DNA of 64,000 nucleotides from IMGVR_UViG_3300042887_005053:62001-126000, one strand, 5' to 3'; positions 4,776 through 61,985 are shown, numbered from the stretch's first letter. Numbers and translations: made by a program. The notes: generated by a model not told the origin, from the letters alone.

Positions 4776-5399
4776 GTGGAGAGCTTAAGAAATCTTGAAG
4801 TCAACAGATTAATCAAAGAATTAGACTTTATTAAATCGGATTATAATTATCGGTCAGAACTAATTCAATCAATAGATAAAGAATTTATAAATTCAGTTGA
4901 AAATTTTCTAAATACACATCAAAGTCTTAAAGATATTTTTGATGAGAAAACTAAAAAAAATACTGAACATCAAAACATTGAACAAGTTCAAGAGTCAAAC
5001 TATTTTGATGAAGGCCAAGATGAGATGGTTGAGGTTATAGATGATACAATAGTTGAAATAGATGAAAATGCCAAACTTAAACAATTATATAGATTAATAG
5101 CAAAGTCTACACATCCAGATAGAATTAAAGATACTAATCTCAAAGAATTGTATGTTGAGGCAACAATGGCATATGATGAAAATAATATACTACCAATTTT
5201 AAGTATTTGTAATAAGCTACAAATTCCTTATGAAATATCAGAAGACGAAATAGCTTTAGTTAAAGAAGAAATTGAATTAACAAAGAAGAGAATAAAATTT
5301 CTAGAAAGTACATTCACTTGGGAGTGGTATAGAAACGAAGACATCAAGATTAAAGACCAGGTAATATTAAACTATATAAAACAACAGATATCTAAATAG
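4776..5399 (+). CDS. J-domain-containing (DnaJ-like) protein
   Basis: LKQLYRLIAKSTHPD: helix II plus HPD motif, followed by AYDE. Confidence 0.7.
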   Translation: MESLRNLEVNRLIKELDFIKSDYNYRSELIQSIDKEFINSVENFLNTHQSLKDIFDEKTKKNTEHQNIEQVQESNYFDEGQDEMVEVIDDTIVEIDENAKLKQLYRLIAKSTHPDRIKDTNLKELYVEATMAYDENNILPILSICNKLQIPYEISEDEIALVKEEIELTKKRIKFLESTFTWEWYRNEDIKIKDQVILNYIKQQISK

Positions 5400-5925
5400 T
5401 ATGTTTATAAAGTAAATATTGTAATTCAATATTATTTTTGACATAGATTGGATCTGGTTCAACATCTCTTGGCCAAAACTCAATACCACCTAAAAAGTTC
5501 AATCCTCTTACTAAACTGCAATTATTCGGTAGTCCCTTGACTACTCTTGCATCACTCATTCTAAAACTTCCAGCAACATCCCCTAAATTTTTAGCTAAAT
5601 CATGTTGTTCCCATTTCAAATCTTCTACCTTAATGTGTTTGTTATAAAATTCTTTATTAACAACTAAAACATAAAAGTCACCATACTCCATTTCACTTTT
5701 GATTATTAAATCGGCAAATCTTGAACCACTTAAATATCTTTTAAGTTTTTCATACATAATATCAGCTTGAACTAAGCTTTCAGAGGGATTTACAAATTGA
5801 CTATATTCAACATATAACCAATTATCTGATTGGTCTATAAAACTTGGATCCTTATCAAAAAAAGAAAATAAAAAATCTTCATAATCATTCATCAATGATT
5901 CATTGAATCTTTTCAAATATTTCAT
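5392..5925 (-). CDS. Hypothetical protein with MKYLKRFNES leader
   Basis: ORF track; recurring N-terminal motif. Confidence 0.6.
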   Translation of the reverse strand: MKYLKRFNESLMNDYEDFLFSFFDKDPSFIDQSDNWLYVEYSQFVNPSESLVQADIMYEKLKRYLSGSRFADLIIKSEMEYGDFYVLVVNKEFYNKHIKVEDLKWEQHDLAKNLGDVAGSFRMSDARVVKGLPNNCSLVRGLNFLGGIEFWPRDVEPDPIYVKNNIELQYLLYKHTI

Positions 5926-6554
5926 ATTATATTAATCGTTGGTTTCAATTCATTGATAAGCTTTTCAAACTCATCTTTTCTGAAATACTTTTTGAATTGA
6001 TCATTTTCTTTTTCTATATTAGATAGAGTCCACTCATTTGTATTAGAACTGTTATAGATATATTTATTGCCATCATGTTCAATCTCAATTACTTTTGATG
6101 ACAACTTATCATAGAAGTTTTTGATGTCGCTATTCACTTTGTATAATTTAGAGTCATCCCATTTATTAAGTGTATCATTCCAAGATTGGAAAATAATATA
6201 AATTGGATTTTCTAACTCATTAGCACCAATATTGTAAACTAAAATAAATCTACAAGGTTTGTTCAAAAAAGTTTCTAAATCTTCTGTGTTCTGAAGTGAT
6301 GATGTTTTAAGACCAATACTTGATAATGAATTTATAAATTCAGTATTAGTTGTTAGTAAATCTAAATTTAACTTATCCGCAAAATCTTGTTGTGGTAAAT
6401 GAAATGTATCGTAGATATCAACTTCTTCAGCACCAATTGATTTTAATATGTTTTCGTAGAACATACCAAGAGACTCATTTATATCAATATCAACTAAAGC
6501 GACATCAATTACTAATGATTCTAAATATTTTTGATACGACTTCAAATACTTCAT
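5922..6554 (-). CDS. Hypothetical protein with MKYLKSY..YLES leader
   Basis: ORF track; recurring N-terminal motif. Confidence 0.6.
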   Translation of the reverse strand: MKYLKSYQKYLESLVIDVALVDIDINESLGMFYENILKSIGAEEVDIYDTFHLPQQDFADKLNLDLLTTNTEFINSLSSIGLKTSSLQNTEDLETFLNKPCRFILVYNIGANELENPIYIIFQSWNDTLNKWDDSKLYKVNSDIKNFYDKLSSKVIEIEHDGNKYIYNSSNTNEWTLSNIEKENDQFKKYFRKDEFEKLINELKPTINII

Positions 6555-6619
6555 ATTGTGTATATATAAATAACTGATCTAATAATTTAATATATATATT
6601 AAAATTGTCTAAAAATTAA

Positions 6620-8035
6620 ATGAAGTTAGTTAAATCATATAACTTATTCTTAGAAGCTCAAAGTCAAGTACAAGCTCAAAACGATTTAGAAAGACCAAAA
6701 ACTATTTATAACCCTTCTAATTTAGTTTCTGAAATTTGTGTTAGTATGGTATTGCTTAATAATGAATTTCTTGATAATATCTTAGATAGAGGTATGAAGG
6801 CAAGATATTCGGAAAACTCTCAAGTATTTTTAACTGATTTGAAAAACTTATTAATATCTAAAAACCGTTTACACTTGGGTAAATTTGAAAATGGTAGATG
6901 TGTAAGTGATGAAGAGTATTCAAAAATAAATGGATTCTTTGGAGAAGTTGACTTTTCGATTGAAAAAGACTGGAATAAACTTAACGATTCTAGAATTACA
7001 GCAAGAAATATAATTGATAAGCTATTAGTTGATTCTAAATTAGAAGAAGATATGATTTCTAAGATCTATTGGATTGGTCCTAATAAGACTAAGGAAAATA
7101 GTGAAGATATTGTAATAGAAACTACCGACGGTAAACAATACAGTTTTTATTTGAACAAAAATTTGAGTATGACTAAATCATCATCATTCAACACTTTTGC
7201 TGATGATATTATAGGTCAAGATATAGAACAGTTATATAGTGAAGAATACATTTCTAAATGGGATAAGTTAATTCAAAACTGGGTTAGAGTAATTTATGAA
7301 AATGCTAAAAAAGGTATTCAAATTCACATTGAAAAATTTATTGATCCAAGTCGAATCAATACTATAGGATGGTTTGAGTTTTTTGATATCAAACACAGAG
7401 ATCCAAGATTCAAGCATTTAGGAGAATTTATTCCTGAACTAAATAAAAATATTTTAGAGTTTTCTGATTTATTGAATGAAATTTGGAAAAATAGTGAGAG
7501 TTGTTTCATGGATTTTGATAGAGTATACAAAGATTGGATGGAAAAGAAAATTTATATTCTTAATTCTAGAATATTGGAACATATTATAACAGACTCACTT
7601 ACTGTTAATAATATTGACGAAATAAAGAAATTAGAAGATGGATTTAAGTCAGCTGATGGTACTCTTAAAATGAAAATAATCAAAAATATAGTTGAAAAAT
7701 TAGGATGCACTGAGAAGTCAGTCTATTATTTAGGAAATAAAGGAAACTCATTTCATCAAGTACCGTCTCGTCAATTTTTTAGAGAGTTTTATGATGACTT
7801 AAAAGTTAAATTTGATTATCATGTTAAATTAATAGTTGAAAAAGAAGAGGAAAGTAATGACTTCAATTTCAAGCTTATTTTAGAACTAGATAATCAACCA
7901 CTAATAAATTGTAATATTCAAGTTAAGTTTTCTGGTGGTGAAGTATCTAACAAATTGTCAGCTAAATTTAAATTCGAGCCTGTTGATAATTTTAATGTAT
8001 TGATCTCAAATAAAATAAGTGGTGTAGATTCATAA
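6620..8035 (+). CDS. Hypothetical protein, probably virion-associated
   Basis: 471-aa ORF; leader MKLVKSYNLFLEA; TAATATATA at 6588. Confidence 0.6.
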   Translation: MKLVKSYNLFLEAQSQVQAQNDLERPKTIYNPSNLVSEICVSMVLLNNEFLDNILDRGMKARYSENSQVFLTDLKNLLISKNRLHLGKFENGRCVSDEEYSKINGFFGEVDFSIEKDWNKLNDSRITARNIIDKLLVDSKLEEDMISKIYWIGPNKTKENSEDIVIETTDGKQYSFYLNKNLSMTKSSSFNTFADDIIGQDIEQLYSEEYISKWDKLIQNWVRVIYENAKKGIQIHIEKFIDPSRINTIGWFEFFDIKHRDPRFKHLGEFIPELNKNILEFSDLLNEIWKNSESCFMDFDRVYKDWMEKKIYILNSRILEHIITDSLTVNNIDEIKKLEDGFKSADGTLKMKIIKNIVEKLGCTEKSVYYLGNKGNSFHQVPSRQFFREFYDDLKVKFDYHVKLIVEKEEESNDFNFKLILELDNQPLINCNIQVKFSGGEVSNKLSAKFKFEPVDNFNVLISNKISGVDS

Positions 8036-8037
8036 CT

Positions 8038-8358
8038 ATGAAATATTTGAAGGCTTTTAATGAAATGAATTATCAAGATTTGTTTGATTATGATCATATA
8101 ATTAACATATTGAAAAAGTCTCACGGATGGGGTTTTGGTGTAATTTCAAATACTGATGAGTTTGAAAATAACGAAGAGTATTTTTTGAATCCTCAAAATG
8201 ATAATGAATACGCTGAACAATTTCACATTTTTCTTACCGATAAAACAACTGGTCAACTAAGAGGTGAGTTCAACAATAAACATAGTCTAAGACTTGGTAA
8301 ATGGAAGACTGGTATTCAAGTTGCTGCTCCAGTGTCTATTTATAACAAGTTAACGTAA
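8038..8358 (+). CDS. Hypothetical protein with MKYLKAFNE leader
   Basis: ORF track; recurring N-terminal motif. Confidence 0.6.
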   Translation: MKYLKAFNEMNYQDLFDYDHIINILKKSHGWGFGVISNTDEFENNEEYFLNPQNDNEYAEQFHIFLTDKTTGQLRGEFNNKHSLRLGKWKTGIQVAAPVSIYNKLT

Positions 8359-8369
8359 AAGACTAGTCA

Positions 8370-8378: not shown

Positions 8379-8382
8379 ATTT

Positions 8383-11300: not shown

Positions 11301-12297
11301 GATTCAACAACCTAATGGCCAATTTGAAGATGTTTCTATACAATATTCAACTGGTGTATTTAGAGAGGATGTTGACTACAAATATATTTATATAACAGAA
11401 GAATCTAAAAAATTAGTAGATGAAGCAAAAAAATACGAAGAAGAAGGTGACCTAAACAAAGCAGTAAGTTTGCTTGAAGATGCTGCTAAATTAGATCCAA
11501 ATAATTCATTTATTTTTGATAAGTTAGAACAACTTAAAAAGTTATCTGAGTTAATGAGAACTAATCCTATATTTGATTTTTTACTGAATATTGTTACTCT
11601 ACCCCTGAAGGTCATATTCAATGTAGTTGAATATATTATGAATTTTTTCAAATCTCTAACAAATCCATTTGAGTTACCAGGAGCGATTGCTGAATTTGTT
11701 TCATTCAAATGGTTAAAGGATTTGTTTGACCCAACAAGTAAAAAGAGTATGTTTGCACTGGCTGGTATATTATTTGATGTTCCAACTTTTACTAAAGAGT
11801 GGTTACCTAGTTTAATATCTGGTTCAAAAAACGAATTTGATTTCAATAAAATTATCAAACTTCCTTGGGTCATGAGACTTCCTAAATTTAGTTTAGAACA
11901 GTTTAGATTTTTGACATTTGGATACTATGGTAAACCAACTCCAAATTTGATACCTCTTCAGATGTTAAATGCAATTCTATCTTTAATTGAAAAAATAATA
12001 AATGCTTTTATAGATTTTGTCTGGAGTCTTTTAGGATTAGGTGCAATAATTGATCCACCCTATGTCAGACTAACGAGAGATTTTAATTTAGCAGAAAATA
12101 TGAGTCCAAAAGATATTTTGGATTTACTATCAGGTAATTATAAAGATCCAAACAGTGAAGAAAATTCAAATAAAGAGTACAACTTTGCTTATGAAATTAA
12201 GGCACCTGATGGTAGAGATATTAGAGATTTGAACTACGAAGAGTTACAAAAATGGGTAGATGAGAATAAAAACCTGCAATTTGTTTATAACTTTTAA
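8383..12297 (+). CDS. Large putative structural protein with one TPR-like helix pair and amphipathic helical ends
   Basis: 1304 aa; TAATATATA at 8370; EEEGDLNKAVSLLEDAAKLDPNN is TPR-like; internal repeat YSTGxFxxxVDYxYIY occurs twice. Confidence 0.55.
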   Translation: MALVNFSIPNIPSFKSTTPSPKPILFVPDVEKLIKFAQGDLGIADSIRTSMIVTNIAKCTDPFQLESFLKAAGGKLKNPIESYFQDGRLTFDPSDLSIDPKPGDLGGLKSLEKALFQSIFDTQKPYVEIIKLVTENLVKIEDIVARVLAAGGSSMKPADNPKALGYKGNSEVAQSMFKLQSLAKPSTSNQNQNQNQDQNVESNTPEEKTAEVLPPGFSYATQSILYSTGEFDPTVDYTYIYKDFKDDSIVLPDGTASATANQDDEKPKVVVFGIFDSTWKPLQSSFIDTPIQTANSNGTVQKNVNWLKRSNKWFNKFDQYVEGTDFSYQTDADGNIIYYGSNEGPSVTLEGETKYVKEGFPKLSVKNGLISSYRNYYIDETRIKLSKREDLSVQERQNIISEIGKTIDKTDSTGIPNLQNVIEGNLKNSFCSITNENNTPGLPADFITNAKFPFKPKKITYNSKEVWIDPEAQYDLKIIKCDSSIDIKYLDIEGDSSKTVSTQILRFVKKSLVIRLSNDENFDYILTGTTDTIPLQDNTNEFVLDNHSDSSAYSIEIRQSKIPNEYSDGISWDEIIGNTTTGNRFTLTTSNGTSRLSISFLDSQVQNPTFNDSYILPNGKKFFVDDSGVLLYTEIYNGSLSDYLPSNLEKNTVIINMSDFSLTETRGIIPPNLIRVKDTNYKFGKLISNTQITNEQLVTTNPYSKNGLYGTPNIKNQNIEQIYRYMITEDDTETYYIVEGILSSDNKQKLNAPNGGSSTNASGNSPDSGDYSLPDVVGAFPIFIEMLVDIFSKLIPLINQFINTIKNPTQIVFNIIVAKMGDAFGTEAPKFGFFSSDFLNDLRKLRKIEDDDVTERAKKMREFVNNSKLFNYVNIDENANPRFILDGIATVKLFGDAPGLSSLPGIKFGIESNLTSLASSDPKEPFKLVFQGPTVNTLKSIPELSGLVANLENLKSSALSNVNLEPKLEIPSEIQQPNGQFEDVSIQYSTGVFREDVDYKYIYITEESKKLVDEAKKYEEEGDLNKAVSLLEDAAKLDPNNSFIFDKLEQLKKLSELMRTNPIFDFLLNIVTLPLKVIFNVVEYIMNFFKSLTNPFELPGAIAEFVSFKWLKDLFDPTSKKSMFALAGILFDVPTFTKEWLPSLISGSKNEFDFNKIIKLPWVMRLPKFSLEQFRFLTFGYYGKPTPNLIPLQMLNAILSLIEKIINAFIDFVWSLLGLGAIIDPPYVRLTRDFNLAENMSPKDILDLLSGNYKDPNSEENSNKEYNFAYEIKAPDGRDIRDLNYEELQKWVDENKNLQFVYNF

Positions 12298-12743
12298 CGA
12301 TAGACCTCTATCATTTTTTCAACATGTCTTATAATCCAAGGCTCAACAACTGGTAATTGATTTAAGAAATCTAATTCATAGTTATAAGCTCTAAATTCTT
12401 CTAATTTCGGATCAATCAATATTTTTTCATTGTACACAAAAAGGTGATATGATTCATGTACAATTAAAGATGATATATTTGTTATTGAATTAATCTTCAG
12501 GTCTTTTGTATTTATAACAATCGTATTTGGAGGAAATGTTGTTGAAGAAGTGCCAATTATATAATCGATATTCTTGCAATACTTCACAACCATATTATAT
12601 TTTACCTCGTCATATCTCTTTATTAGGTAGAGAGCACTATCGACTTTTTGCTTGTAATTACTGACATCACTTATCTTTATTTGTGAGAATAAATTAAGTG
12701 TATTAAGTAATAAAATTAAAATTATGGCATTTTTGATATACAT
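12294..12743 (-). CDS. Exported zinc metallopeptidase-like protein
   Basis: Signal peptide ending ..FSQ; LIVHESYH (HExxH) and downstream EEFRAY. Confidence 0.65.
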   Translation of the reverse strand: MYIKNAIILILLLNTLNLFSQIKISDVSNYKQKVDSALYLIKRYDEVKYNMVVKYCKNIDYIIGTSSTTFPPNTIVINTKDLKINSITNISSLIVHESYHLFVYNEKILIDPKLEEFRAYNYELDFLNQLPVVEPWIIRHVEKMIEVYR

Positions 12744-13177
12744 TCTTGAACTCCTTTTTTGATTGCCGATGAAACAGTAGTTTTAGAAAATGGAACTTTT
12801 CCATCTGTTAATTCAATAAATGAAGCTCTGACTTCTGTATCTGATTCTCCTATACCTTCATATATCTGATCTTTGTGATAGAACCTAATACCAACCTGAG
12901 TTATTTGATTTGTTTTTTCCATGCCACCTATTCTTAAAGATTTTTTAGGAACACCAAAGTAGAAAACTTCAATTTTAATTGGAGAACCATCATCTGATAA
13001 GCAATATTTGTTTGACAGCTCATCTTCAGCCATTTGCTTAATACCGAAACAGATGTTCCTGTTGCCAAGTTCTTTAACCTTGGCAGTAGAATAAACTGTG
13101 TCAATAAAAACACAATCTTGTGCATAAAATATATTTGTAATTAAGATAACTAAGATTGATAAAATAATTTTTTTCAT
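12722..13177 (-). CDS. Exported protein, short paralog of the CsgG-like protein
   Basis: Signal peptide ending YAQ; aligns by eye with 16818..17540. Confidence 0.6.
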   Translation of the reverse strand: MKKIILSILVILITNIFYAQDCVFIDTVYSTAKVKELGNRNICFGIKQMAEDELSNKYCLSDDGSPIKIEVFYFGVPKKSLRIGGMEKTNQITQVGIRFYHKDQIYEGIGESDTEVRASFIELTDGKVPFSKTTVSSAIKKGVQECISKMP

Positions 13178-13186
13178 TTCTATTTG

Positions 13187-14896
13187 TTAATTTTGTTTTC
13201 CAGTTTTTATTAGGTAAAAATTAGTAGTTCCGTTATTAACTGGTGATTGTATTGTTACTGTTTGTGACCCAGGTATTGTATTTCTGAGATCTGTATTACT
13301 ATTTTGTATTGTAGACCACTCAGATGTAGTAAATATTCTATAGTTAGGTAAAGGACTTATCCAGCTAGTGAATCTATCATTTATTCTTGCATAAATGTAA
13401 TAACTATCACTTACACTAATCTTACCATCATTGTTGACATCAAATAGATAAAATGATTTAGATGTAGGATTTATTGATCCTAAGACAATAGAAGATGTAG
13501 ATTGAAAATCTAAGACTGATGGTTTGTCAATCGTAAGATTCGAAATTTCAAAATAATATTCTGTCATAGGATTACTTGGTTTACTGATTGTGTATTTACC
13601 AGTCAAATCTGTATAGACTGTTTCATCAAGTATCCAAGAACTAGTCGTTATGATATTATCAAATTCTATAACATAGTTTAATGATACATAATCTGGTAGA
13701 TCGTTCCAAAGACCACCACCAACAAACTGTGCGTAATTTTCACCTCCTGAGTTGTTTGGTTCTCCTCCGTTCCAGTTATTATAAATAGTTCTTCCAAATC
13801 GAGCTTGTGATTTCATGAATACTCTTTTAATTTCATCATCAGTAAGAGCGACATTGTGTACCTCAAATCTACCTATTCTACCGTCAAAAAATAAACCAGA
13901 TCCCATATTTGTAACATCAGAACCAGCTAAGAAATAATGTAAACCGTTTCCATTTGCATATGGTGTTTGTCTTGAAAAGGCAACTTGTGAGAAATAAATA
14001 CCATTAAGATATCCTTTAAGAGTTGTACCAGAATATGTTAATGTTACCATGTTCCAACTTCCCACCGAAATCGTTGTTGATATTTGACTAATACCACTAC
14101 CATTCCAAAGACCAAGTCTTAGAGTTGCTGTCGTTCCATTTGAACCAGTGACTTCGATGTTTGAATCATGCCAACCGGAATTGATTGATTGTGCTCCTCT
14201 TTCTGAGACTATTACGCCGTTACCCCAAGCAAGTACCCAAATGTTTAGAGTAAGATCTTTAGATGATACTGGAAAATTTGCGGCTAAATTTCTAGTAGCC
14301 ATATATCCTTGTGGATTAGCTGCACCACCAGTATTGAAGAACATAAAGTCTCCTAATAAGGTTGAGTATCCATATCCATTTGTTTGACTTCTAAAGAGAT
14401 CGGCGTGAACTGTACCTGATAAGTTATTAACAACAGTACCACTACCACTGTAAGATCTATTTACACTGAAATCATAATCAGCTACTTTTCCTCTAGTTAC
14501 ATCAGATTCTGTCCATGACCATCCACCACTTGGCTCAGAGTAGTAGTCTGATGTGACATCTTGTGAATATCCTATCCAACCAGAGGGCCAAGTATTGAAT
14601 AAGAATGAGTTTTCACTTGCATCTGAGATAGTGGCTAGATGACCATTCATGGACTCACAGATTGTCTTGGAATTAGTCCAAGTATTAGTTGTTGTTGAAC
14701 GATAGTATGAGTGTCCGTTATAGTTTGTTTGAGCTGTAAATCCAGTCAGATTAGATGTGGTTCTTTTGTATATTTTTACTGGTATACCTGATACACCAAC
14801 ACCATCCTGATTGTAAATATATCCAGAATAGTTTAAATTTTGTGAAAAAACTATTGAGTGAAGTAATAAAAGAAGTAATAAATTTAGTATTTTCAT
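13187..14896 (-). CDS. Exported C-type lectin / LamG / dockerin-like protein
   Basis: Signal peptide; CTL motifs (GHSYY, GHLATI, WIG, GEPNN, WND); LamG-like core; DVNNDGKISVSD Ca-binding loop. Confidence 0.75.
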   Translation of the reverse strand: MKILNLLLLLLLHSIVFSQNLNYSGYIYNQDGVGVSGIPVKIYKRTTSNLTGFTAQTNYNGHSYYRSTTTNTWTNSKTICESMNGHLATISDASENSFLFNTWPSGWIGYSQDVTSDYYSEPSGGWSWTESDVTRGKVADYDFSVNRSYSGSGTVVNNLSGTVHADLFRSQTNGYGYSTLLGDFMFFNTGGAANPQGYMATRNLAANFPVSSKDLTLNIWVLAWGNGVIVSERGAQSINSGWHDSNIEVTGSNGTTATLRLGLWNGSGISQISTTISVGSWNMVTLTYSGTTLKGYLNGIYFSQVAFSRQTPYANGNGLHYFLAGSDVTNMGSGLFFDGRIGRFEVHNVALTDDEIKRVFMKSQARFGRTIYNNWNGGEPNNSGGENYAQFVGGGLWNDLPDYVSLNYVIEFDNIITTSSWILDETVYTDLTGKYTISKPSNPMTEYYFEISNLTIDKPSVLDFQSTSSIVLGSINPTSKSFYLFDVNNDGKISVSDSYYIYARINDRFTSWISPLPNYRIFTTSEWSTIQNSNTDLRNTIPGSQTVTIQSPVNNGTTNFYLIKTGKQN

Positions 14897-14898
14897 AA

Positions 14899-16818
14899 TT
14901 AAAGTATAAATCTTGTGCCCATTAATATTGTGTAGTTTAGAACATTTTCTTTAATAGCATATGCTCCTCCTATATTTATATTAAATTTAAATGTCTTTGT
15001 AATTGAAATATTCGTTCCAACAATAGGTAAAATAACATGAGGTGATTTTAGAAGAATATCATTATAATATTTTACATAAGGTGCATATACATAAAGTCCA
15101 ATAAGTTTTACATCAAATCTCTGATTGACTTTCCAATCATACATGGATCCTGCTATAAAAGCAGTACCAATAAATTTATTTTCATAAACATTCCCATAAG
15201 AGGTGGTAACTAAATAAACTAATTTTAAATTTTGTGGTTTCTGAAACTTCCACATTTGACCAATTGCTAGGGTTCCATATATAGACTTCTTCGCATCTAA
15301 TCCAAATGTAACTGATGTACAAGCAAGATCAATTCTTTTTTCAGTTAAGTTTGCATAAAATCCCATAACATTTGGACCTTTAATTGAGCTAGTATAATCA
15401 GCCATAATGCCATGAACTTTAAGTCCATCCCATCTCATAGATGTATAACCGCCAGAGATTTTTGTTCCATATTTTATATCATTATTTTGAAAATTGAATC
15501 CAGCATAATCACTAGCCAAGATAACAGTAGGTTTACCATTATTTGATGTTGACTTTTCGACAGAGTTAACTGAATTACCAACAACATTCACGGATCCACC
15601 ACCTTTTTCTTCAGCTTTGTTTTCTGTTGTATTGTCACCGGGTAATTGTTCACTTTTCTTTAGTTCACCATTCTGAGATGTTCCATTATTAGAGTTTGTC
15701 GTATTCGAACTATTTTCTGATGACTGATTGTTATTAGTATTTGAAGAATTATTCGGATTCTGAGATGTTGAATTGTTATTTGCAGTTGATGAATTATTTT
15801 GAGGTGACTGGTTGTTTGTATTGTTAGCAGAATTCTGAGATGATTGAGTATTAGTATTTGATGAGTTACTTTGAGATGATGTATTATTCGACTGCTGATT
15901 AGTATTGGTATTTAATGAATTTGAAGAGTTATTCGATGACTGATTACCATTAACAGTTGTTTGATTATTATTAGGATTTTGAGTATTACTGGTCTGATTA
16001 TTACTCTGATTATTAGTTTGGTTGTTGTTAGGATTTTGAGTATTAACGGTCTGATTATTACTCTGATTATTAGTTTGGTTATTAGTTTGATTATTATTAG
16101 AATTTTGACTACCAGATTGATTATTAGTCTGTAAATTACTATTTTGTTGACTATTTGTAGTTTGATTAGTGTTATTAGTCGTTGTATTTTGATTATTCGA
16201 ACTATTATTAGTAGAATTTGAGTTACTAGATTGTTGTGAATTACTCGAATTTGAGCTACTCTGATTTGTTGAATTTGATTGTTGATTGATGTTATTATTT
16301 TTGTTATCTGAATCACCACTCATCTCAATCCCGGTATTTTGACTTTCGTTATTTTTCTTTTTTGATTCTTCACTTTTACTAGTACCATTCAATGTGGCAT
16401 CTAAAAGATTCATGCTACTATTTCTCATATTAGCGGCGTCTTGAACCGCTGAGAGTGAGTTTAATATACTTATGAAATTAAGTGCTGTGGTTTGTCCAAT
16501 ATTTATAGCAGTAGGTAGTCCTACAATACTCGCACAAGGATTATTACCACCAAATGAATTATAAACATCATCTGCCCAATTCTCAAATGATCCATTGTAG
16601 AAGTCATTTGATTGAAATGTTTGAATCTGACCATAGTAAGAGACTGTTATTCCATTACTGGGTACACTTAGAGTTTTCTTGACACCGGTACAAGGATCGA
16701 TATAAGAATATTGAAATGTTGATTGTGAAAAAGTGGTGAAATTTAAAAAAGAAAATAGTAAGGTAATTAATACGCCTATTACCTTACTATTTTTTCTTTT
16801 GAATTTCTCATATAACAT
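14899..16818 (-). CDS. Exported protein with long N/Q/S/T-rich region and C-terminal beta-barrel-like domain
   Basis: Signal peptide; about 210-aa polar low-complexity tract; alternating beta-strand pattern ending YTILMGTRFIL. Confidence 0.65.
   Translation of the reverse strand: MLYEKFKRKNSKVIGVLITLLFSFLNFTTFSQSTFQYSYIDPCTGVKKTLSVPSNGITVSYYGQIQTFQSNDFYNGSFENWADDVYNSFGGNNPCASIVGLPTAINIGQTTALNFISILNSLSAVQDAANMRNSSMNLLDATLNGTSKSEESKKKNNESQNTGIEMSGDSDNKNNNINQQSNSTNQSSSNSSNSQQSSNSNSTNNSSNNQNTTTNNTNQTTNSQQNSNLQTNNQSGSQNSNNNQTNNQTNNQSNNQTVNTQNPNNNQTNNQSNNQTSNTQNPNNNQTTVNGNQSSNNSSNSLNTNTNQQSNNTSSQSNSSNTNTQSSQNSANNTNNQSPQNNSSTANNNSTSQNPNNSSNTNNNQSSENSSNTTNSNNGTSQNGELKKSEQLPGDNTTENKAEEKGGGSVNVVGNSVNSVEKSTSNNGKPTVILASDYAGFNFQNNDIKYGTKISGGYTSMRWDGLKVHGIMADYTSSIKGPNVMGFYANLTEKRIDLACTSVTFGLDAKKSIYGTLAIGQMWKFQKPQNLKLVYLVTTSYGNVYENKFIGTAFIAGSMYDWKVNQRFDVKLIGLYVYAPYVKYYNDILLKSPHVILPIVGTNISITKTFKFNINIGGAYAIKENVLNYTILMGTRFIL
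15680..16300 (-). repeat. Asn/Gln/Ser-rich coding low-complexity repeats
   Basis: Repeated NNQT/NNQS units and two copies of NNNQTNNQSNNQTxNTQNPNNNQT-type units; boundaries approximate. Confidence 0.85.
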
Positions 16819-17540
16819 TATGACCTAAAAATACCTTTTTTGATCATTCTTGAAACTATTCTCGAAGAAGCCGTCTCAAGTGACTTTTTCGTAGTTATAC
16901 CAATAGTTGATTGATTGAACTTTACTTCTGTGTCATCTACTCCATCTAATATTGAAGCAGTTTTAATTGTACTAGCTTCACCTAATCCAGAACCAACTAT
17001 TACTTCTCCAGTTTCAGCATCAACAAATTTTACTTGTAGACCCAATCTAGTTGTCTGTGTAGTCTTCGATTCGCCATTTATCTTTACAACCTCATCCTCT
17101 GAGACCGAAAAGTCATAAACTTCAATATAAACAAAGTATTCAGCAAGTTTTATTTTACCTCTACCATCAACTTTATTTTCGGTGAATCCTTTATCAGATG
17201 CTTTGAATTGATTGACCATTCTTTCTTTTATTTCAAGTTTATCTTCAGTGAAAACAAATCTACCAGTATATTCTAAATACTCAAGTACTATGTTTGTAAC
17301 ACCAAGACCAACTCTTTTGTCTTTCAATTCTGGGTACATTGAATATAACTCTTCATTGATTCCGATTTTTAATAATTGAATTGGAATAACTATTGAATCA
17401 GTATAGTCTGATACCACATCTATAGATTGTTGTTTCTCAAAAGCAGCTTGGTATTGCTCAGTCTTAACACTACCGACAGGCTGAGCAATACTAGCTATTG
17501 AAAAAATCATATAAATTAAGAGTAAGCCTAATTTTTTCAT
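16818..17540 (-). CDS. CsgG/HfaB-family exported protein
   Basis: Signal peptide; L..TGRFVFTE, AEYFVYIEVYDF, LQVKFVDAETGEVI pattern typical of the CsgG fold. Confidence 0.7.
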   Translation of the reverse strand: MKKLGLLLIYMIFSIASIAQPVGSVKTEQYQAAFEKQQSIDVVSDYTDSIVIPIQLLKIGINEELYSMYPELKDKRVGLGVTNIVLEYLEYTGRFVFTEDKLEIKERMVNQFKASDKGFTENKVDGRGKIKLAEYFVYIEVYDFSVSEDEVVKINGESKTTQTTRLGLQVKFVDAETGEVIVGSGLGEASTIKTASILDGVDDTEVKFNQSTIGITTKKSLETASSRIVSRMIKKGIFRS

Positions 17541-17548
17541 TTTATTAA

Positions 17549-18100: not shown

Positions 18101-18117
18101 AGTTTTAATTTATTTTT

Positions 18118-18447: not shown

Positions 18448-18456
18448 AATTTTAAT

Positions 18457-23511: not shown

Positions 23512-23559
23512 TTTGTGAATTTCGCAATTAATATATAATATCAAAATATAGTATTCAAA

Positions 23560-28080: not shown

Positions 28081-28105
28081 TTGTTTACAAATTAATATAT
28101 AAGTT

Positions 28106-49869: not shown

Positions 49870-50724
49870 TTAAAGAAGAACCTCAGTTCTATCTCTAAGA
49901 TTATATATCTTAATTGGTCTTGTCTCAGCCACCCAATCTACTTTATAATATTGAAGTTTTGACCAATCTCTGATCTTTGTTTTTACTTGAACAGTCTTAT
50001 AACCAATATCATCTCTAAAAACAATCATATCAGTACCAAAAATCATATCAATGAAATCACCATTACCACCAGAATACACTATTTGAAAATCTTTTGAAAC
50101 TAAAAGTTTCATTACTTCTTCTTCTGCTCTTTCTCCAATATCAGTAAATTGTTTACTGAATTTCGTGAATTTTCTAAAATCCTCTAATCCATCACCATTA
50201 GTCACAAAGTAAAAAATAATTAACTTTTTCAAATAAGGCTTTATAGATTCTAATCCAGTTTTAGGATCCTTAACAACAGAATCATATATTGATTTACCTT
50301 TTTCAAAATTTTTCTGAATACCTCTCATTATTAATTCAGTCAGTAAATCAGCTAAATCACTCATATTAGTATTTAACTTATTTACATAATCCCACTCACC
50401 ACTCTCATTACGAACAATACTCTTAGATTCAATTCCGCCAAATTTAAACAATCTACTCTCAATGTAAGAATTATCCATAGATGTCTTTCTAAGAACTTCT
50501 AGACCAGAATAAAATTTAGAAATCTCTTCATTGGTCAAAGGACTTTCATAAGACTGTTCTTCGAAAATCTCATCAATTATCTTCATCATACCAAGACCAG
50601 ATGACATATATAGCCAATCTTTTAAAGTATTTATTCTATCAAATAAGATATTTCTGTCTGGTATCTCTGGTGAGTCAAATATAGAGATATTATATTCAGT
50701 TATGTATTCAGTAAATCTTTTCAT
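49870..50724 (-). CDS. Protein with C-terminal PD-(D/E)xK nuclease-like motif
   Basis: GERAEEEV...GTDMIV...TVQVK; leader MKRFTEYITE. Confidence 0.5.
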   Translation of the reverse strand: MKRFTEYITEYNISIFDSPEIPDRNILFDRINTLKDWLYMSSGLGMMKIIDEIFEEQSYESPLTNEEISKFYSGLEVLRKTSMDNSYIESRLFKFGGIESKSIVRNESGEWDYVNKLNTNMSDLADLLTELIMRGIQKNFEKGKSIYDSVVKDPKTGLESIKPYLKKLIIFYFVTNGDGLEDFRKFTKFSKQFTDIGERAEEEVMKLLVSKDFQIVYSGGNGDFIDMIFGTDMIVFRDDIGYKTVQVKTKIRDWSKLQYYKVDWVAETRPIKIYNLRDRTEVLL

Positions 50725-53078: not shown

Positions 53079-54401
53079 TTAAATACCAGTATAATTAGTT
53101 GGACTCATACTTTTTAATTCTTTTTTTATGAGTTCTGGTATTTCTAATTGGTCGATAAATTGGTTGATTACTTCTTGGTCTATTTCTTTTCCTCTAGCAA
53201 GTTCTTTAAGTTTTTCGTAGGGTTCTTGTACTTTTTCTCTTCTTAAAACAGTTTGGATTCCTTCGGTTACAACAGACCAATTATTTTCTAAATCTTCTGT
53301 TATTACTTCTTCATTTAATACAAGTTTATCTATTCCTTTTTTAATTGAGTCTATACTTATTGTAATGTGCGCAATTGGAACCCCGATATTTCTGAGTACA
53401 GTTGAATCTGTTAAATCTCTTTGTAGTCTTGAGATTGGTAGTTTTTCTGATAGATGAGTTAGTATAGCATTTGCCATTCCTAAATTTCCTTCTGCATTTT
53501 CGAAGTCGATTGGATTTACTTTGTGTGGCATTGCTGAAGAACCGGTTTCATTTGGATTCGTTTTTTGATTGAAATAGTTCATAGAAATGTATTGCCAAAT
53601 ATCTCTACAAAAATCAATTAGAATTACATTGATTCTTCTTAGGTTGTCGAACAAAACAGCAAGTGAATCATAATGATCAATTTGAGTAGTATATTGAGAC
53701 CTTTTTAATCCCATTTTTTGAGTGAAAATATTTGCAAATTCTTTCCAATCGATTTGTGGATAAGCTACATGATGGGCATTAAAGTTACCTGTTGCTCCGC
53801 CAAATTTACAAGAAAGTTCTATTTTATGTAAACTAAGAATTTGATTATCTAATCTTTCAACAAATACCATTAATTCTTTGTCCATTTTGGTTGGAGAAGC
53901 AGGTTGACCGTGTGTATGAGCAAGCATTGGTGTGTCTTTACAATTATCTGACAAAGACTTAATCTTATTATTTAGTTCGGTTATATCTTTGATATAAGTA
54001 TTTAGCCAATTAAGAAGTTGTAAAGGAATTGCTGTGTTATTAATATCTTGTGATGTTAGACCAAAATGAACAAACTCTTTGAATTCAGATAGGTTAAGTT
54101 TTTCTAATTTTGTTTTGATAAAATACTCGACTGCTTTTACATCGTGATTGGTCTTTTTTTCGATTTCTTTTATCTCATTAGCATCGGCTTCACTAAAGTC
54201 ATAGTAAATACTCATAAGATCATTAGCATTAGGTATGTTAAGATTTATGGCATTATTTAGTTCAATTAAATATTTGACTTCAACATATACTCTATATTTA
54301 ATAAGAGCGAATTCCGAAAAGAATTCTGATAGTTTTTGAGTTTTGTTGTGATATCTACCATCAATTGGACTTACTGAGGTTAAGGGTGTTAATTTATTCA
54401 T
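53079..54401 (-). CDS. purB: Adenylosuccinate lyase
   Basis: SPIDGRY, TNHDVKAVEY, HFGLTSQD, GSSAMPHKVNPIDFEN; start probably the ATG at 54401. Confidence 0.95.
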   Translation of the reverse strand: MNKLTPLTSVSPIDGRYHNKTQKLSEFFSEFALIKYRVYVEVKYLIELNNAINLNIPNANDLMSIYYDFSEADANEIKEIEKKTNHDVKAVEYFIKTKLEKLNLSEFKEFVHFGLTSQDINNTAIPLQLLNWLNTYIKDITELNNKIKSLSDNCKDTPMLAHTHGQPASPTKMDKELMVFVERLDNQILSLHKIELSCKFGGATGNFNAHHVAYPQIDWKEFANIFTQKMGLKRSQYTTQIDHYDSLAVLFDNLRRINVILIDFCRDIWQYISMNYFNQKTNPNETGSSAMPHKVNPIDFENAEGNLGMANAILTHLSEKLPISRLQRDLTDSTVLRNIGVPIAHITISIDSIKKGIDKLVLNEEVITEDLENNWSVVTEGIQTVLRREKVQEPYEKLKELARGKEIDQEVINQFIDQLEIPELIKKELKSMSPTNYTGI

Positions 54402-55179
54402 CGTCTGCGGTAAAGTCTTGTTCAAAGCTGAGCATCAAATTTGAGTTTTCGTCTTTGACTAAAATAAAGGTTTCGAAAATACTGAAATAAATGTTGTCAT
54501 TTTGATCATTAATATTTGATAAATATTTTTTACCAAAAATTAATTGTGTGTTTTTAGCATCAACTTCATCAACTATAAGTTCCCATTTTGATAGTTCATT
54601 CATAGTTACTTTATTATCAGTTACATTAATATTAACAATTCTTTCTTCGTTGTTAATACCACAAAGTTTCTTAACATCTGCGAAATCTTCTTTAGAAATT
54701 TTGAATGACCACTTTGATAATTTTGGATTTAGTCTTGTTTCTAAAAATTGTGGATTTAGATCACGGATTTTGTGTTGTTCTCCACCAACAATAGTGATTT
54801 TCAGTTTGTTATTTGTAAACTGTGCTGCTCTAACATGCATAGTATCTTCTGAGTCTGGACTTGGTTTGAATACTAAATCTAGTTTAATAGTCGAGTTAGT
54901 GTTAAATAAAGCTAAGTTCTTAGCAAATTTTGTAGCAGAAGTGATGATTAAATCGAAAGTAGTATCTTGTTTGAAACCTTCAATATAGTCATCTGTCTTC
55001 AAGAGATAAGTTTTAAGTGCTAAAACACTAACATCGTTAGATATCATTGAATAGAGTAGAATATTAGAACTTGTGATTTTAATTTTAACACAGTCTTCAA
55101 TATTAGTGAGGTCTTTGAATTTTTGTAGAAAGTCACTAAAGTTATTTTGATTAAATTTTAATGCTAATTTATTTGCCAT
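54394..55179 (-). CDS. Putative DNA sliding clamp (gp45/PCNA-like)
   Basis: About 260 aa with twofold repeated alpha/beta pattern; close to the polymerase gene; no diagnostic motif. Confidence 0.45.
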   Translation of the reverse strand: MANKLALKFNQNNFSDFLQKFKDLTNIEDCVKIKITSSNILLYSMISNDVSVLALKTYLLKTDDYIEGFKQDTTFDLIITSATKFAKNLALFNTNSTIKLDLVFKPSPDSEDTMHVRAAQFTNNKLKITIVGGEQHKIRDLNPQFLETRLNPKLSKWSFKISKEDFADVKKLCGINNEERIVNINVTDNKVTMNELSKWELIVDEVDAKNTQLIFGKKYLSNINDQNDNIYFSIFETFILVKDENSNLMLSFEQDFTADDE

Positions 55180-57570: not shown

Positions 57571-57586
57571 ATTAAAAATTAAATAT

Positions 57587-57847
57587 TTGTATTTATATAT
57601 ACCAGAAATAATCTTGTTTAAGAGAATGGATATTAAATTTGAAATCGAAAAGGCTCAAAAAATTGAAATTCTCAATGATAATGATTTACAAAGTGTAAAA
57701 GAATTATACTTTTCTAAGGATGGTATTTTACCAAAAATTTATAATTTTGCTACTACGAAAAAAGGAGAAGAGTCTTCACTTATTTTATCGGATTTAAATA
57801 AAATCAGAAGTATAATTACCAAAAAAATAAGTGATTATACTAGCTAA
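57587..57847 (+). CDS. Hypothetical protein
   Basis: ORF track; true start may be the internal MDIKFE. Confidence 0.4.
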   Translation: MYLYIPEIILFKRMDIKFEIEKAQKIEILNDNDLQSVKELYFSKDGILPKIYNFATTKKGEESSLILSDLNKIRSIITKKISDYTS

Positions 57848-59000
57848 TAACACTAACTACTTCAGGATAATACTCACAAGCTTCTGGATTTTTGCCTTCA
57901 TAGTTAATAACTGATAATGCATATCTCATGGCATTTAATCTACCAATTCTTTTATCGTTTGAATTGATTATTGTCCAAGGAGCTTTTTTAGTTGATGTTT
58001 TTTCAAACATCTGATTTTTGTACATTGTAATAATATTCCACTTTCCGATTACTTTTTCATCGTTTGGTGAAAACTTCCAGAATTTAATAGGTGATGTTTT
58101 TCTTAATTCAAATCTTTGAATTTGTTTTTCTTGTGTTATAGAAAACCAAAACTTAATTAAAGTAATTCCTTGATTAACTAATCCAGCTTCCCACTTATTA
58201 ACATTTTCCATGAAATCTCTATACTGTTCTTCAGTACAATATCCCATAGCTGGTTCAACTACAGCTCTGTTATACCAAGAACGATCAAAGAAAACAATTT
58301 CACCAGGTTTAGGTAATTCTTTTTCGTATCTCGCAAACCAATTATTCTTTTCTTCTTCAGTTGGCATTCCAAGAGCAACAATTCTGAATATTCTTGGATT
58401 CAAAACTTCTGTGAATCTTTTTATAGTAGAACCTTTACCAGCTGAATCTCTACCTTCAAAAACTATTGCAATTCTTTGATTTGTATTTTTAACCCATTCT
58501 TGTAGTTTAACTAGTTCAATTTGAATTTGGTATTTTTCATCTTCGTATTGTCTTCTTGTTAGAATAGATTTTTCACCTTCCATTCTGTCAATGTGTTCTT
58601 CTTCTGGTGATAAACCTTCAGCTTTTTCAATGTATTCATCAACTCTATCGATTAATGACTCATAGTAGATTTCGAATTCTGCTGAAATCATTTTTTTGGT
58701 CCTTTTTCCTTTTAAATCGAGTAGTTGGTGTATTTTTCTTAAAAAAGTTTCTGTATTAAAAAAAGTAACTATTTCTTTAGTGAATTCTTTTTCTAGTTCA
58801 CTTAAAATCATTTCAATATCGATATTGTCAAAATCTTTATAGATTACTTCGCCTTTTTCTGTAGAAATATTTTCTAATATAAAATCACGATAAGTGTTCA
58901 ATCTCATCACAAATTGATTTTCGATATCTTGAAGTTCTTCTACTGGTAGTTCGAATTCTAATTCTTCGTTTAGAAATGTATTAAATGGTTTGAGTTTCAT
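57840..59000 (-). CDS. ppk2: Polyphosphate kinase 2 with N-terminal extension
   Basis: FEGRDSAGKGSTIKR, FDRSWYNRA, IKFWFSI, WKFSP.D, APW...S.DK. Confidence 0.93.
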   Translation of the reverse strand: MKLKPFNTFLNEELEFELPVEELQDIENQFVMRLNTYRDFILENISTEKGEVIYKDFDNIDIEMILSELEKEFTKEIVTFFNTETFLRKIHQLLDLKGKRTKKMISAEFEIYYESLIDRVDEYIEKAEGLSPEEEHIDRMEGEKSILTRRQYEDEKYQIQIELVKLQEWVKNTNQRIAIVFEGRDSAGKGSTIKRFTEVLNPRIFRIVALGMPTEEEKNNWFARYEKELPKPGEIVFFDRSWYNRAVVEPAMGYCTEEQYRDFMENVNKWEAGLVNQGITLIKFWFSITQEKQIQRFELRKTSPIKFWKFSPNDEKVIGKWNIITMYKNQMFEKTSTKKAPWTIINSNDKRIGRLNAMRYALSVINYEGKNPEACEYYPEVVSVIS

Positions 59001-59011
59001 ATAATTATATA

Positions 59012-60842: not shown

Positions 60843-60867
60843 AAAACTATATATTAAAAGTAAAGGT

Positions 60868-60967: not shown

Positions 60968-60985
60968 ACTTAGAGTATATATAAA

Positions 60986-61017
60986 AAAAGTCAGACACAT
61001 TTCTGAATCTGACTTTT
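60986..61017 (-). terminator. Intrinsic terminator
   Basis: AAAAGTCAGA...TCTGACTTTT with T-tract on the minus strand. Confidence 0.7.
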
Positions 61018-61076
61018 AATTGAGCCCAACTGGATCTACCGGTTGTCCACCAATCTATTTTAAGTAAATAGATAAA

Positions 61077-61622
61077 CTATTTCTTTCTAAAAATTCTTAA
61101 ATATGTATCACTATCATTCCAGACAGAAAGTGGTTTTTTACTTGGTTCTATTTCTTCGTAAGTCTCAAAAGACATATTCTTTACATATTCGGCACCAACA
61201 TTTACTGGTTGAAAATCACAGTCATCAATAAATATTATACCATTTTGAATCATGAACTTTTGACAAAGTTCCCAATCATTAACAACTGCTTCTGGTGTAT
61301 GTAATCCATCGATAAATGTAAACGCTAATTTTAAATCAAAAACTGAATCTAAAAATTCTCTTGCTTCAAAGCTTTCTGATCCGGTTCTACAATGAAATAC
61401 ATTATCTAAGTGTTTAGTGTTATTGATGAAGATGTCATATTTGCTTGGTACACCTTGTTGTCTACCATCCCATGGATCAATTACAAAAACTCTCTTAAAG
61501 AATCTAGATAAATATTGGGTTGTTAATCCATCTAAAGCGCCAATCTCCAAACAGTCTAATTCGCTAAAAGTATCAAAGTATTTGTCTGACCACCTGACAG
61601 TATGTTCTGTAGTTTCAATCAT
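61077..61622 (-). CDS. Class I SAM-dependent methyltransferase (Methyltransf_24-like)
   Basis: LEIGALDG, FIDGLH, GIIFIDD. Confidence 0.8.
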   Translation of the reverse strand: MIETTEHTVRWSDKYFDTFSELDCLEIGALDGLTTQYLSRFFKRVFVIDPWDGRQQGVPSKYDIFINNTKHLDNVFHCRTGSESFEAREFLDSVFDLKLAFTFIDGLHTPEAVVNDWELCQKFMIQNGIIFIDDCDFQPVNVGAEYVKNMSFETYEEIEPSKKPLSVWNDSDTYLRIFRKK

Positions 61623-61679
61623 ATTAAAGTATTTTTTATTTTTATATTAAAAAAATTTATAGAGTTTAATATATAATGA

Positions 61680-61985
61680 ATGAAAATAATTAAAAAATTT
61701 GAAGCTTGGGCAGGATATCCAATACCGACTACTTCATTAGACAATGAATTAGAATACAAAAAGTGTAAAGATTGTGATTCGGTTTATCAAGTTTATAAGC
61801 CTAAGTCAATAAATTGTAAATATTGTGGATCAAAAGATTTATTAATGTTGAGTGAAGATGAGTTTTACAATGAACTAAAAAATAATATAGATCCAAAAGA
61901 GTACGAACTAGCTCTAAAACACAGAAGCAAGATCGCTAATACATTTATTGATTTATCTAAAGAAGAAGATGATTTTATTAATTAA
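61680..61985 (+). CDS. Zinc-ribbon protein
   Basis: CKDC...CKYCGS; leader MKIIKKFE. Confidence 0.65.
   Translation: MKIIKKFEAWAGYPIPTTSLDNELEYKKCKDCDSVYQVYKPKSINCKYCGSKDLLMLSEDEFYNELKNNIDPKEYELALKHRSKIANTFIDLSKEEDDFIN

Follow-up and report, generated by a model that had tools for sequence, protein, structure and literature searches.

Why do so many otherwise unrelated proteins encoded in one stretch of huge-phage DNA begin with nearly the same 10 residues? The window analysed here is a 64,000-nucleotide stretch (positions 62001-126000) of the 204-kb contig IMGVR_UViG_3300042887_005053, from an uncultivated lake-water huge phage known only from metagenomes. The original prediction listed 12 unrelated proteins with a recurring N-terminal tag resembling the capsid-targeting sequence (CTS) of phage T4, most of them behind TAATATATA or a close variant, and inferred a large set of head-packaged, possibly injected proteins. 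About one in nine proteins of this phage start with such a tag (MK-Y/H-L-K-x-F-E/N-x-F). Our data confirm the observation and extend it well beyond the window, whereas the interpretation is only partly supported and, without virion data, rests on indirect evidence.

To determine if the tagged proteins are real, the start of each open reading frame (ORF) was examined. All 12 N-termini were ATG-initiated ORF starts at the positions originally given, and 11 of the 12 were recognised by a profile HMM of the tag. The twelfth, MKRFTEYITE at 50724, scored below the HMM threshold but resembles the T4 CTS wording MKTYQEFIAE. The tagged ORFs and associated features of the window were as follows (window coordinates; G001 denotes a 98%-complete 465-kb relative of this contig, which is itself denoted G000):

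5392-5925, minus strand: tagged ORF, 177 aa, starting MKYLKRFNES (HMM score 16.7); second gene of the unit that starts at 6554; no Pfam or PHROG family was found.
5922-6554, minus strand: tagged ORF, 210 aa, starting MKYLKSYQKYLES; widely conserved family with E12-S13 and D24-I-N-E-S-L-G30 invariant; residues 1-30 predicted disordered.
6559-6601, no strand assigned: divergent promoter region between 6554 (minus) and 6620 (plus), holding TAATATATA (6588-6596 on the plus strand, 6601-6593 on the minus strand) and TTATATATA (6569-6561).
6620-8035, plus strand: tagged ORF, 471 aa, starting MKLVKSYNLFLEA; the G001 orthologue starts MKWIKGWELFVEK.
8038-8358, plus strand: tagged ORF, 106 aa, starting MKYLKAFNEM; operon-internal.
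23560-24006, plus strand: tagged ORF, 148 aa, starting MKIANYNDFLILEA; TAATATATA at 23529-23537.
28106-29563, plus strand: tagged ORF, 485 aa, starting MKVEKFNNWGLIKEE|AAPRLP; E14 is kept in 95% and E15 in 99% of more than 100 orthologues; TAATATATA at 28093-28101.
42035-43099, plus strand: weak member, 354 aa, starting MIKKFQTSS; the G001 orthologue starts MIKLFEEFSGG and is recognised by the HMM.
43108-43662, plus strand: tagged ORF, 184 aa, starting MKYLKTFESYGSE; joint top HMM score (20.5) among the ORFs of this contig.
48598-49014, minus strand: tagged ORF, 138 aa, starting MKIVKNYSDFVSKINES; TAATATATA at 49045-49037.
49049-49513, minus strand: tagged ORF, 154 aa, starting MLYLKTYENW; TGTATATAT at 49545-49537.
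49870-50724, minus strand: weak member in T4-like wording, 284 aa, starting MKRFTEYITE; TAATATATA at 50738-50730.
57840-59000, minus strand: tagged polyphosphate kinase 2 (PPK2), 386 aa, starting MKLKPFNTFLNEE; PPK2 domain at 148-370; residues 1-14 disordered in the AF2 model; E12 invariant among 30 orthologues; TAATATATA at 59014-59006.
61680-61985, plus strand: tagged ORF, 101 aa, starting MKIIKKFEAW; weak zinc-ribbon hits; TAATATATA at 61667-61675.

Nine of the 12 originally listed genes had TAATATATA or T(G/T)TATATA(T/A) 5 to 50 nt upstream, and the other three (5925, 8038 and 43108) were second or later genes of such units; the original statement that most sit behind this element is thus correct.

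To determine whether the tag exceeds an AT-rich background, its frequency was compared between N-terminal and internal positions. The pattern [KR]x[FY][NEQSK] occurred within the first 9 residues in 36 of 220 proteins, compared to 2.5% of internal windows and 1.4% of windows starting at an internal Met (P about 1e-18). A profile built from the 12 N-termini found 27 tagged ORFs of 220 in this contig and 57 of 525 in G001. When the rebuilt HMM was run over both (745 ORFs, 210,050 residues), a score of 10 or more gave 55 N-terminal hits, which lay within the first 12 residues of the called ORF (nearly all at residue 1), and 0 internal hits. The DNA pattern for M-K-x-(L/I/V/F/M)-K-x-(F/Y) occurred 37 times in each of two relatives, compared to 2 for the reversed control pattern. 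By BLASTP of the protein bodies, the 27 tagged proteins of this contig fell into 27 separate families, and the 57 of G001 into 47. All 13 orthologue pairs between the two kept a tag-like N-terminus at 25-76% body identity. The tag also recurred in related huge phages, with a different wording (MIKKFxxFINES) in the 735-kb LR756501. A full-text search found no paper that mentions it.

To determine whether selection acts on the peptide or on the nucleotides, codon usage was examined. Third-position A/T was 0.766 in tags compared to 0.775 in untagged N-termini, and identical residues shared a codon 0.60 of the time against 0.55 expected, indicating selection at the protein level. An unsupervised N-terminal clustering found the tag in G000 (7-fold excess) and G001 (9-fold) but nothing in Tenacibaculum phage PTm1, an equally AT-rich Bacteroidota phage (29.7% GC), while in T4 it recovered IPII, IPIII, gp61.1 and IPI.

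To further determine if the phage possesses the head module in which a CTS would act, its structural genes were searched. A T4-type portal was identified (Portal_T4, PF07230, E = 1e-58), together with a gp21-like head maturation protease fused to a scaffold (phrog_207, E = 2e-31), for which Peptidase_S80 was just above the Pfam cut-off and S77 was below it, and whose GEFDHP motif matches T4 GELNHP. The capsid protein was homologous to T4 gp23, including the N-terminal propeptide (KALKKWSPVLENMGV against ELLNKWKPLLEGEGL).

In T4, CTS targeting depends mainly on residues 4 and 7, and processing on residues 8 and 10 (PMC9026906). Here, position 7 was F/Y in 64 of 64 tags and position 4 was L/I/V in 63 of 64. 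T4 IPI (MKTFKEF) matched the DNA pattern of the tag, and LR756501 encodes MIKTFDEFINES, close to T4 MKTYQEFIAEA. However, the tag HMM scored the T4 CTSs only weakly (IPI 4.0, gp61.1 6.8), and IPII and IPIII were not among its top 14 hits.

A Glu followed the anchor aromatic within 9 residues in 64 of 64 tags, compared to 61% in controls. In three orthologue families of about 100 unique sequences each, this tag-end Glu was far better conserved than the variable tag residues before it: E12 in 98% for PPK2, E12-S13 in 100% for the 210-aa family, and E14 in 95% and E15 in 99% for the 485-aa family. Its position and context varied, nonetheless (F-E-S-F, F-N-E-S, L-x-E-A), and no single cleavage rule fits every tag; some PPK2 orthologues are also annotated with a shortened N-terminus such as MINEE or MYKLLEE, which may be start-site miscalls. 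The tag-end Glu resembles conserved x-N-E-S sites in the head proteins. The x-N-E-S motif occurred 5 times in the protease-scaffold protein, the most NES-enriched protein of both proteomes (P = 5e-6), at domain boundaries conserved in relatives, and H-S-I-N-E|N was conserved in the capsid protein at the place of the T4 gp23 cleavage site FLTE|AEIGG.

The tags appeared to be add-ons outside the fold. AF2 pLDDT was below 50 for residues 1-14 of PPK2 and residues 1-30 of the 210-aa family, despite invariant residues there. The tagged RNA ligase 1 carried 19 extra N-terminal residues relative to T4 Rnl1, and where a gene boundary differed between G000 and G001, the newly separate ORF carried its own tag.

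By promoter class, tagged genes split 73 (TATATATA-type, or both types) to 4 (host-type TAnnTTTG only), compared to 322 to 154 for untagged genes, with an odds ratio of 13 in G001 (P = 6e-7) and 4.4 in G000 (P = 0.04). The TATATATA class drives sheath, portal, fibre and baseplate genes, from which alone its timing is inferred. This class also precedes about half of all genes, so co-expression with virion genes is weak evidence, and four tagged genes lie in units with only a host-type promoter.

Taken as a whole, the recurring N-terminus is best explained as a portable, roughly 10-residue amphipathic targeting peptide with the consensus M1-K2-(Y/H)3-(L/I)4-K5-x6-(F/Y)7-(E/N)8-x9-F10, followed by a short acidic or small-residue linker that contains a conserved Glu. 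With moderate confidence, we suggest that it is most likely the counterpart, in this huge-phage clade, of the T4 CTS. In the proposed mechanism, which is inferred throughout, the tag docks the protein onto the protease-scaffold core late in infection, the protein is enclosed when the gp23-like shell assembles, the prohead protease removes the tag after the conserved Glu at sites of the type phi-N-E|S or phi-x-E|S/A, and the mature proteins would be released into the host with the DNA. A complex prediction of a tagged protein with the protease-scaffold gave no answer. Against this reading, the number of tagged proteins is very large (11% of ORFs in G001, against 3 to 5 proteins in T4), and several are enzymes normally thought of as cytoplasmic, including PPK2, RNA ligase 1, a CCA-adding enzyme and a GATase-domain protein.

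It remains possible, although tentative, that huge Bacteroidota phages of the Mahaphage-related clade load 50 or more different tagged proteins into the capsid through a T4-derived targeting peptide and inject them with the DNA, the cargo of RNA-repair enzymes (RNA ligase 1, CCA-adding enzyme), PPK2 and many fast-evolving orphan proteins forming a ready-made take-over and counter-defence kit, with the wording of the tag co-evolving with the scaffold in each lineage (MKYLKxF, MIKKFxxF, MKTYQEF). If the tag is a capsid-targeting signal, the N-terminal sequence alone predicts the packaged and possibly injected proteome of uncultivated huge phages, about 10% of their genes and most of them currently of unknown function; it would point to candidate early-acting effectors and counter-defence enzymes, extend the CTS principle from a handful of proteins to a large, evolvable delivery system, and offer new targeting peptides for protein packaging in phage capsids. 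Even if the destination is not the capsid, a shared address label on 27 unrelated proteins here and 57 in a near-complete relative is a clear feature of huge-phage cell biology.

The best surviving alternative, which we consider unlikely, is that the tag docks proteins to a different phage-made partner or compartment, such as a chaperone, a replication or assembly factory, or a membrane patch, without leading to packaging. An amphipathic, predicted disordered peptide with basic flanks would suit many binding partners, several cargo enzymes are expected to act in the cytoplasm, and the phage encodes its own Hsp70. However, Hsp70 and the tag are not co-distributed: LR756501 and Lak-B5 have Hsp70 but few MKYLK-type tags, whereas LR756500 has tags but no Hsp70. 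This alternative also does not explain the apparent match to T4 CTS positions 4 and 7, the conserved Glu-Ser boundary shared with the scaffold and capsid protein, or the bias towards the virion-gene promoter class.

Less likely still, the tag may be a regulatory processing or degradation signal, in which the Glu would be a cleavage or degron site controlling the activity or lifetime of accessory proteins in the cell. The Glu-(Ser/Ala/Glu) boundary, invariant or nearly so, does sit inside a disordered N-terminal extension, and the 210-aa family carries a second invariant I-N-E-S-L-G site. On the other hand, T4-type prohead proteases act inside the prohead (PMC5694885), a degron does not need the conserved positions 2, 4, 5 and 7 upstream of the Glu, and no dedicated second protease was looked for or found. 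A by-product of AT-rich codon usage, of translation initiation without Shine-Dalgarno sequences in Bacteroidota, or of recombination spreading a promoter-plus-start cassette is already largely refuted, even though the genome is 30% GC, K, Y, L, F and N are AT-rich codon residues, MK starts are common and the tag usually follows a conserved promoter, because PTm1 showed no N-terminal clustering, highly expressed virion genes lack the tag, third-position A/T content and codon sharing are at background level, reversed-pattern controls were 10- to 18-fold lower, and the distance between promoter and ATG varies.

[quoted passage not shown] Shared features are an N-terminal peptide of 10-19 residues on unrelated proteins, M1-K2, a hydrophobic residue at position 4, an aromatic at position 7, what appears to be an end in phi-x-E followed by a small residue (although the Glu register varies), gp20, gp21, gp22-like and gp23 homologues, and variable accessory genes as cargo. 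What differs is the dozens of tagged proteins per genome, the consensus wording (MKYLKxFExF), a Glu at position 8 or 9 in many members rather than 10, the enzymes among the inferred cargo, and a protease and scaffold in one polypeptide. In phiKZ-like giant phages such as SPN3US and 201phi2-1, many head-internal proteins are targeted and then trimmed after Glu by a related prohead protease (S80 family), and the idea of a large injected protein cargo is shared, but those propeptides are mostly 80 to 130 residues long, are not conserved between proteins and end in (S/A/G)-x-E (PMC5694885), whereas the tags here are 10 to 17 residues long and share one consensus. The tags also did not resemble Sec, Tat or lipoprotein signal peptides, as their columns showed alternating K, aromatic and E residues with no hydrophobic stretch, and true signal peptides in the same window looked different, for example MKKIILSILVILITNIFYAQ.

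The window, bases 62,001-126,000, belongs to a 204,336-bp IMG/VR viral contig (G000) with 30% GC. The record is linear and was estimated by CheckV to be 35% complete, and is therefore a fragment of a huge phage. The closest relatives of its capsid protein in the phage collection were the 630-735-kb uncultured phages LR745206, LR756502, LR756504 and LR756501, whereas the Lak phages, Tenacibaculum phages PTm1 and pT24, and the T4-like cyanophages were more distant. A megablast of the baseplate region against the phage collection gave no match. Two features point to a Bacteroidota host: promoters of the host type TAnnTTTG precede many genes, and one protein carries a T9SS C-terminal sorting domain. 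The latter lies in a minus-strand run of ORFs, most of which start with signal-peptide-like N-termini, and these suggest proteins exported by a Bacteroidota host:
Window 12294-20382, minus strand: the whole run of ORFs.
Window 13187-14896, within the run: a lectin/LamG protein.
Window 18457-20382, within the run: a cohesin-domain protein with a T9SS Por_Secre_tail sorting domain.
The same DNA was present in many lake-water and freshwater metagenomes.

The original prediction listed twelve N-termini in the window as copies of a recurring tag resembling the T4 capsid-targeting sequence (CTS), and all twelve were confirmed as ATG-initiated ORFs. A simple ORF call over the whole contig showed that the same kind of start is also used outside the window. 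To determine if the tag was enriched, the pattern [KR]x[FY][NEQSK] was counted within the first nine residues and was found in 36 of 220 proteins, compared to only 2.5% of internal windows and 1.4% of windows starting at an internal Met (P about 1e-18). A profile HMM of the first 16-18 residues separated 26 members (score above 10) from everything else (best other hit 4.4). After a 98%-complete relative of 464,605 bp (G001) was added and the profile was rebuilt, a score of 10 or more gave 55 N-terminal and 0 internal hits in 210,050 residues. At a score of 4 or more, 27 of 220 ORFs in this contig and 57 of 525 in G001 were tagged. The consensus from 64 strong members was M1 K2 (Y/H)3 (L/I)4 K5 x6 (F/Y)7 (E/N)8 x9 F10, followed by residues rich in S, G, E, N and D. 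Occurrences were mostly on large contigs and often in tandem, so the tag is widespread.

To control for chance, the DNA pattern for M-K-x-(L/I/V/F/M)-K-x-(F/Y) was counted against a reversed control. The pattern occurred 37 times in G001 and 37 times in a second relative, G002, against 2 for the reversed control in each. The counts were 67/5 in LR745206, 74/8 in LR756502, 52/4 in LR756504 and 28/9 in LR756500; they were near background in LR756501 (11/6), Lak-B5 (10/3) and PTm1 (3/2), and only modestly above it in pT24 (10/2). An unsupervised pairwise clustering of residues 2-11 of all ORFs demonstrated a 7- to 9-fold excess of similar N-termini in G000 and G001, but none in PTm1, which has the same GC content and host phylum. 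In T4, the top cluster was IPII, IPIII, gp61.1 and IPI, so the method recovered the known capsid-targeting set. Codon usage inside the tags was at background, with third-position A/T of 0.766 against 0.775 and identical residues sharing a codon 0.60 of the time against 0.55 expected. Selection therefore acts on the peptide.

Beyond residue 20, the 27 tagged proteins of this contig were mutually unrelated, forming 27 BLASTP families, and the 57 tagged proteins of G001 formed 47 families. Most tagged proteins had no Pfam or PHROG family, and searches with the 10 tagged window proteins gave almost nothing. The exceptions were enzymes: polyphosphate kinase 2 (PPK2; window 57840-59000), an Rnl1-type RNA ligase, a PolyA_pol/CCA-adding enzyme and a GATase-domain protein. 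A fold search of a 210-aa tagged family matched only uncharacterised phage proteins and no PDB fold. A conserved 485-aa tagged family (window 28106-29563, plus strand) contains a YTHDDMDG motif reminiscent of DHH phosphoesterases, but had no Pfam or PHROG hit.

To determine whether the tag is conserved, orthologues were compared. All 13 reciprocal-best orthologue pairs between G000 and G001 kept a tag-like N-terminus, at 25-76% body identity. In three orthologue families, each with about 100 unique sequences, the first residues varied within the pattern and were followed by a Glu that was invariant or nearly so. In PPK2, N11 was kept in 86% and E12 in 98%; in the 210-aa family, E12 and S13 were kept in 100%, together with a second invariant D-I-N-E-S-L-G at 24-30; and in the 485-aa family, E14 was kept in 95% and E15 in 99%, followed by A/S. 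AlphaFold2 with these alignments left residues 1-14 of PPK2 and 1-30 of the 210-aa family without structure (pLDDT below 50), whereas the rest of each protein folded. Invariant residues in a disordered extension are what linear targeting or cleavage motifs look like. The tagged RNA ligase starts 19 residues before the start of T4 Rnl1. In addition, a gene boundary has shifted between relatives:
Genome 33061-35056, minus strand (15061-17056 of locus L002), in G000: an HD-domain ORF runs in frame into a tag-like internal sequence (LKYIMLFEDF), and the next ORF, downstream, begins with its own tag (MRIKRFNENL).
88740-89510 in G001: a single ORF starts at the first tag and runs on without a break through the region that matches the start of the next G000 ORF.

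The contig encodes a large terminase, a tail sheath and a T4-type portal (PF07230, E = 1e-58). At its very end, it encodes a head-maturation protease (phrog_207, E = 2e-31; Peptidase_S80, E = 1e-5, just above the Pfam cut-off; Peptidase_S77, E = 7e-4, below it). The rest of this region was supplied by a 100%-identical overlapping contig (L011), in which the protease is fused to a 709-aa scaffold-like protein with about ten 14-residue repeats and is followed by a 586-aa capsid protein. The features at this locus and further into the contig were as follows:
Genome 202752 to contig end, full length in L011:6103-8232: the prohead protease fused to a scaffold with about ten tandem 14-residue repeats (YSEYLAENLDKNI), an acidic EEGDKYE repeat and five N-E-S sites.
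Between the portal and protease genes: a small homing-endonuclease-like ORF.
Genome 163567-165129, plus strand, and 173043-174740, minus strand: two large paralogous proteins (520 and 565 aa) that match the homing or HNH endonuclease families phrog_3339 and phrog_559 and lie near the tail sheath and fibre genes.
The capsid protein is homologous to T4 gp23, including the start of the propeptide, and the protease shares the GE(F/L)(D/N)HP motif with gp21. A phmmer search of the capsid protein and the protease against PDB sequences gave no hits.

In T4, gp23 is cut after FLTE and the internal proteins after FIAE (sequences read from the T4 record). CTS targeting depends mainly on residues 4 and 7 and processing on residues 8 and 10 (PMC9026906), and positions 4 and 7 are also the best-conserved positions of the tag here. 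T4 IPI starts MKTFKEF, which satisfies the pattern derived from the huge phage. T4 gp61.1, a 54-aa hypothetical protein (T4 18966-19130; locus L138, 267-431, minus strand), begins MKTFKEFIKE, its first seven residues matching IPI, and was the top T4 hit of the huge-phage tag profile. The 735-kb phage LR756501 uses its own, one-residue-shorter wording, M-I-K-K-(F/Y)-x-x-(F/Y)-I-N-E-(S/A), on about 40 of the 536 ORFs in its first 400 kb, and one of them, MIKTFDEFINES, is close to T4 MKTYQEFIAEA. A few weak members in this contig also read like the T4 wording: MKRFTEYITE, MNRISTYQQFNEE and MIKYFQEFILE.

To identify a candidate cleavage motif, the tripeptide N-E-S was counted across both proteomes. 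It occurred five times in the protease-scaffold protein, making it the most NES-enriched protein of both proteomes (P = 5e-6), and the G001 orthologue ranked second with three sites (two at identical positions, the third four residues away). The sites lie right after the protease domain, after the repeat region and in the C-terminal part; they are conserved in LR745206 and partly in LR756501, and similar phi-N-E-(S/A) sites recur in the PTm1 and pT24 proteins. The capsid protein keeps H-S-I-N-E-N at the end of its conserved propeptide in all close relatives, the corresponding sites being M-N-E-N in LR756501 and I-N-E-N in PTm1, and this is the place of the T4 gp23 site. Tags end in the same kind of site: FNES, INES, LNEE, YLES, FLEA and FES. 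The pattern phi-x-E-(S/A/E/N/G) was present in 67% of tags and about 10% of internal 20-mers, and NES was 3.5-fold enriched in the first 20 residues of all proteins. The data fit removal of the tag by the prohead protease, although this is an inference. A complex prediction of a 106-aa tagged protein with the protease-scaffold gave no answer (score 0.00, low pLDDT) and was not used as evidence either way.

To determine the correlation between the tag and promoter class, promoter motifs were compared. Two promoter classes were found:
Window-wide, for example 6588-6596, 23529-23537, 28093-28101 and 59014-59006: a phage-specific TTAATATATA motif, 5-50 nt before virion genes and most tagged genes.
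Host-type examples in genome 38,300-46,000: Bacteroidota-type -7 boxes (TAnnTTTG, e.g. TTATATTTGTA), before other genes.
The TAATATATA-type motifs precede the sheath, portal, fibre and baseplate genes. They also directly precede nine of the twelve genes listed in the original prediction, which had placed most of them behind such a motif, and the other three are operon-internal. After promoter class was propagated along operons, tagged genes split 73 (TATATATA-type, or both types) to 4 (host-type only), compared to 322 to 154 for untagged genes. The odds ratio was 13 in G001 (P = 6e-7) and 4.4 in G000 (P = 0.04). Because this class precedes about half of all genes, the association is only modest support. 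The two sequencing runs labelled RNA are probably DNA and covered the region only sparsely, so they gave no transcript ends.

The recurring tag is confirmed and holds across a deep clade of huge phages. Its best explanation, held with moderate confidence while packaging and cleavage are untested, is a T4-type capsid-targeting propeptide system expanded to dozens of cargo proteins, which would annotate about 10% of huge-phage genes by destination. Full-text searches found no paper that describes this motif or a CTS-like system in these phages. The main alternative, a targeting peptide for another destination, is possible but unlikely. The phage encodes an Hsp70/DnaK homologue (genome 6089-7972, plus strand), which is conserved in most large relatives at 57-83% identity (in Lak-B5 the match is split and contains an in-frame TAG), but as the tag's partner it was rejected, since its distribution does not follow the tag. 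A processing or degron signal is less likely still. A paralogous family sharing an N-terminal domain was rejected, because the bodies are unrelated and the tag is predicted to be disordered. A compositional or translational artefact was rejected by the PTm1 control and the codon analysis and is very unlikely.

Auxiliary metabolic genes were also present in the window (Pfam E-values of about 1e-45 to 1e-91):
Window 286-3030, minus strand, and 2997-4097, minus strand, together with 53079-54425, minus strand: carbamoyl-phosphate synthase large and small chains, and adenylosuccinate lyase.
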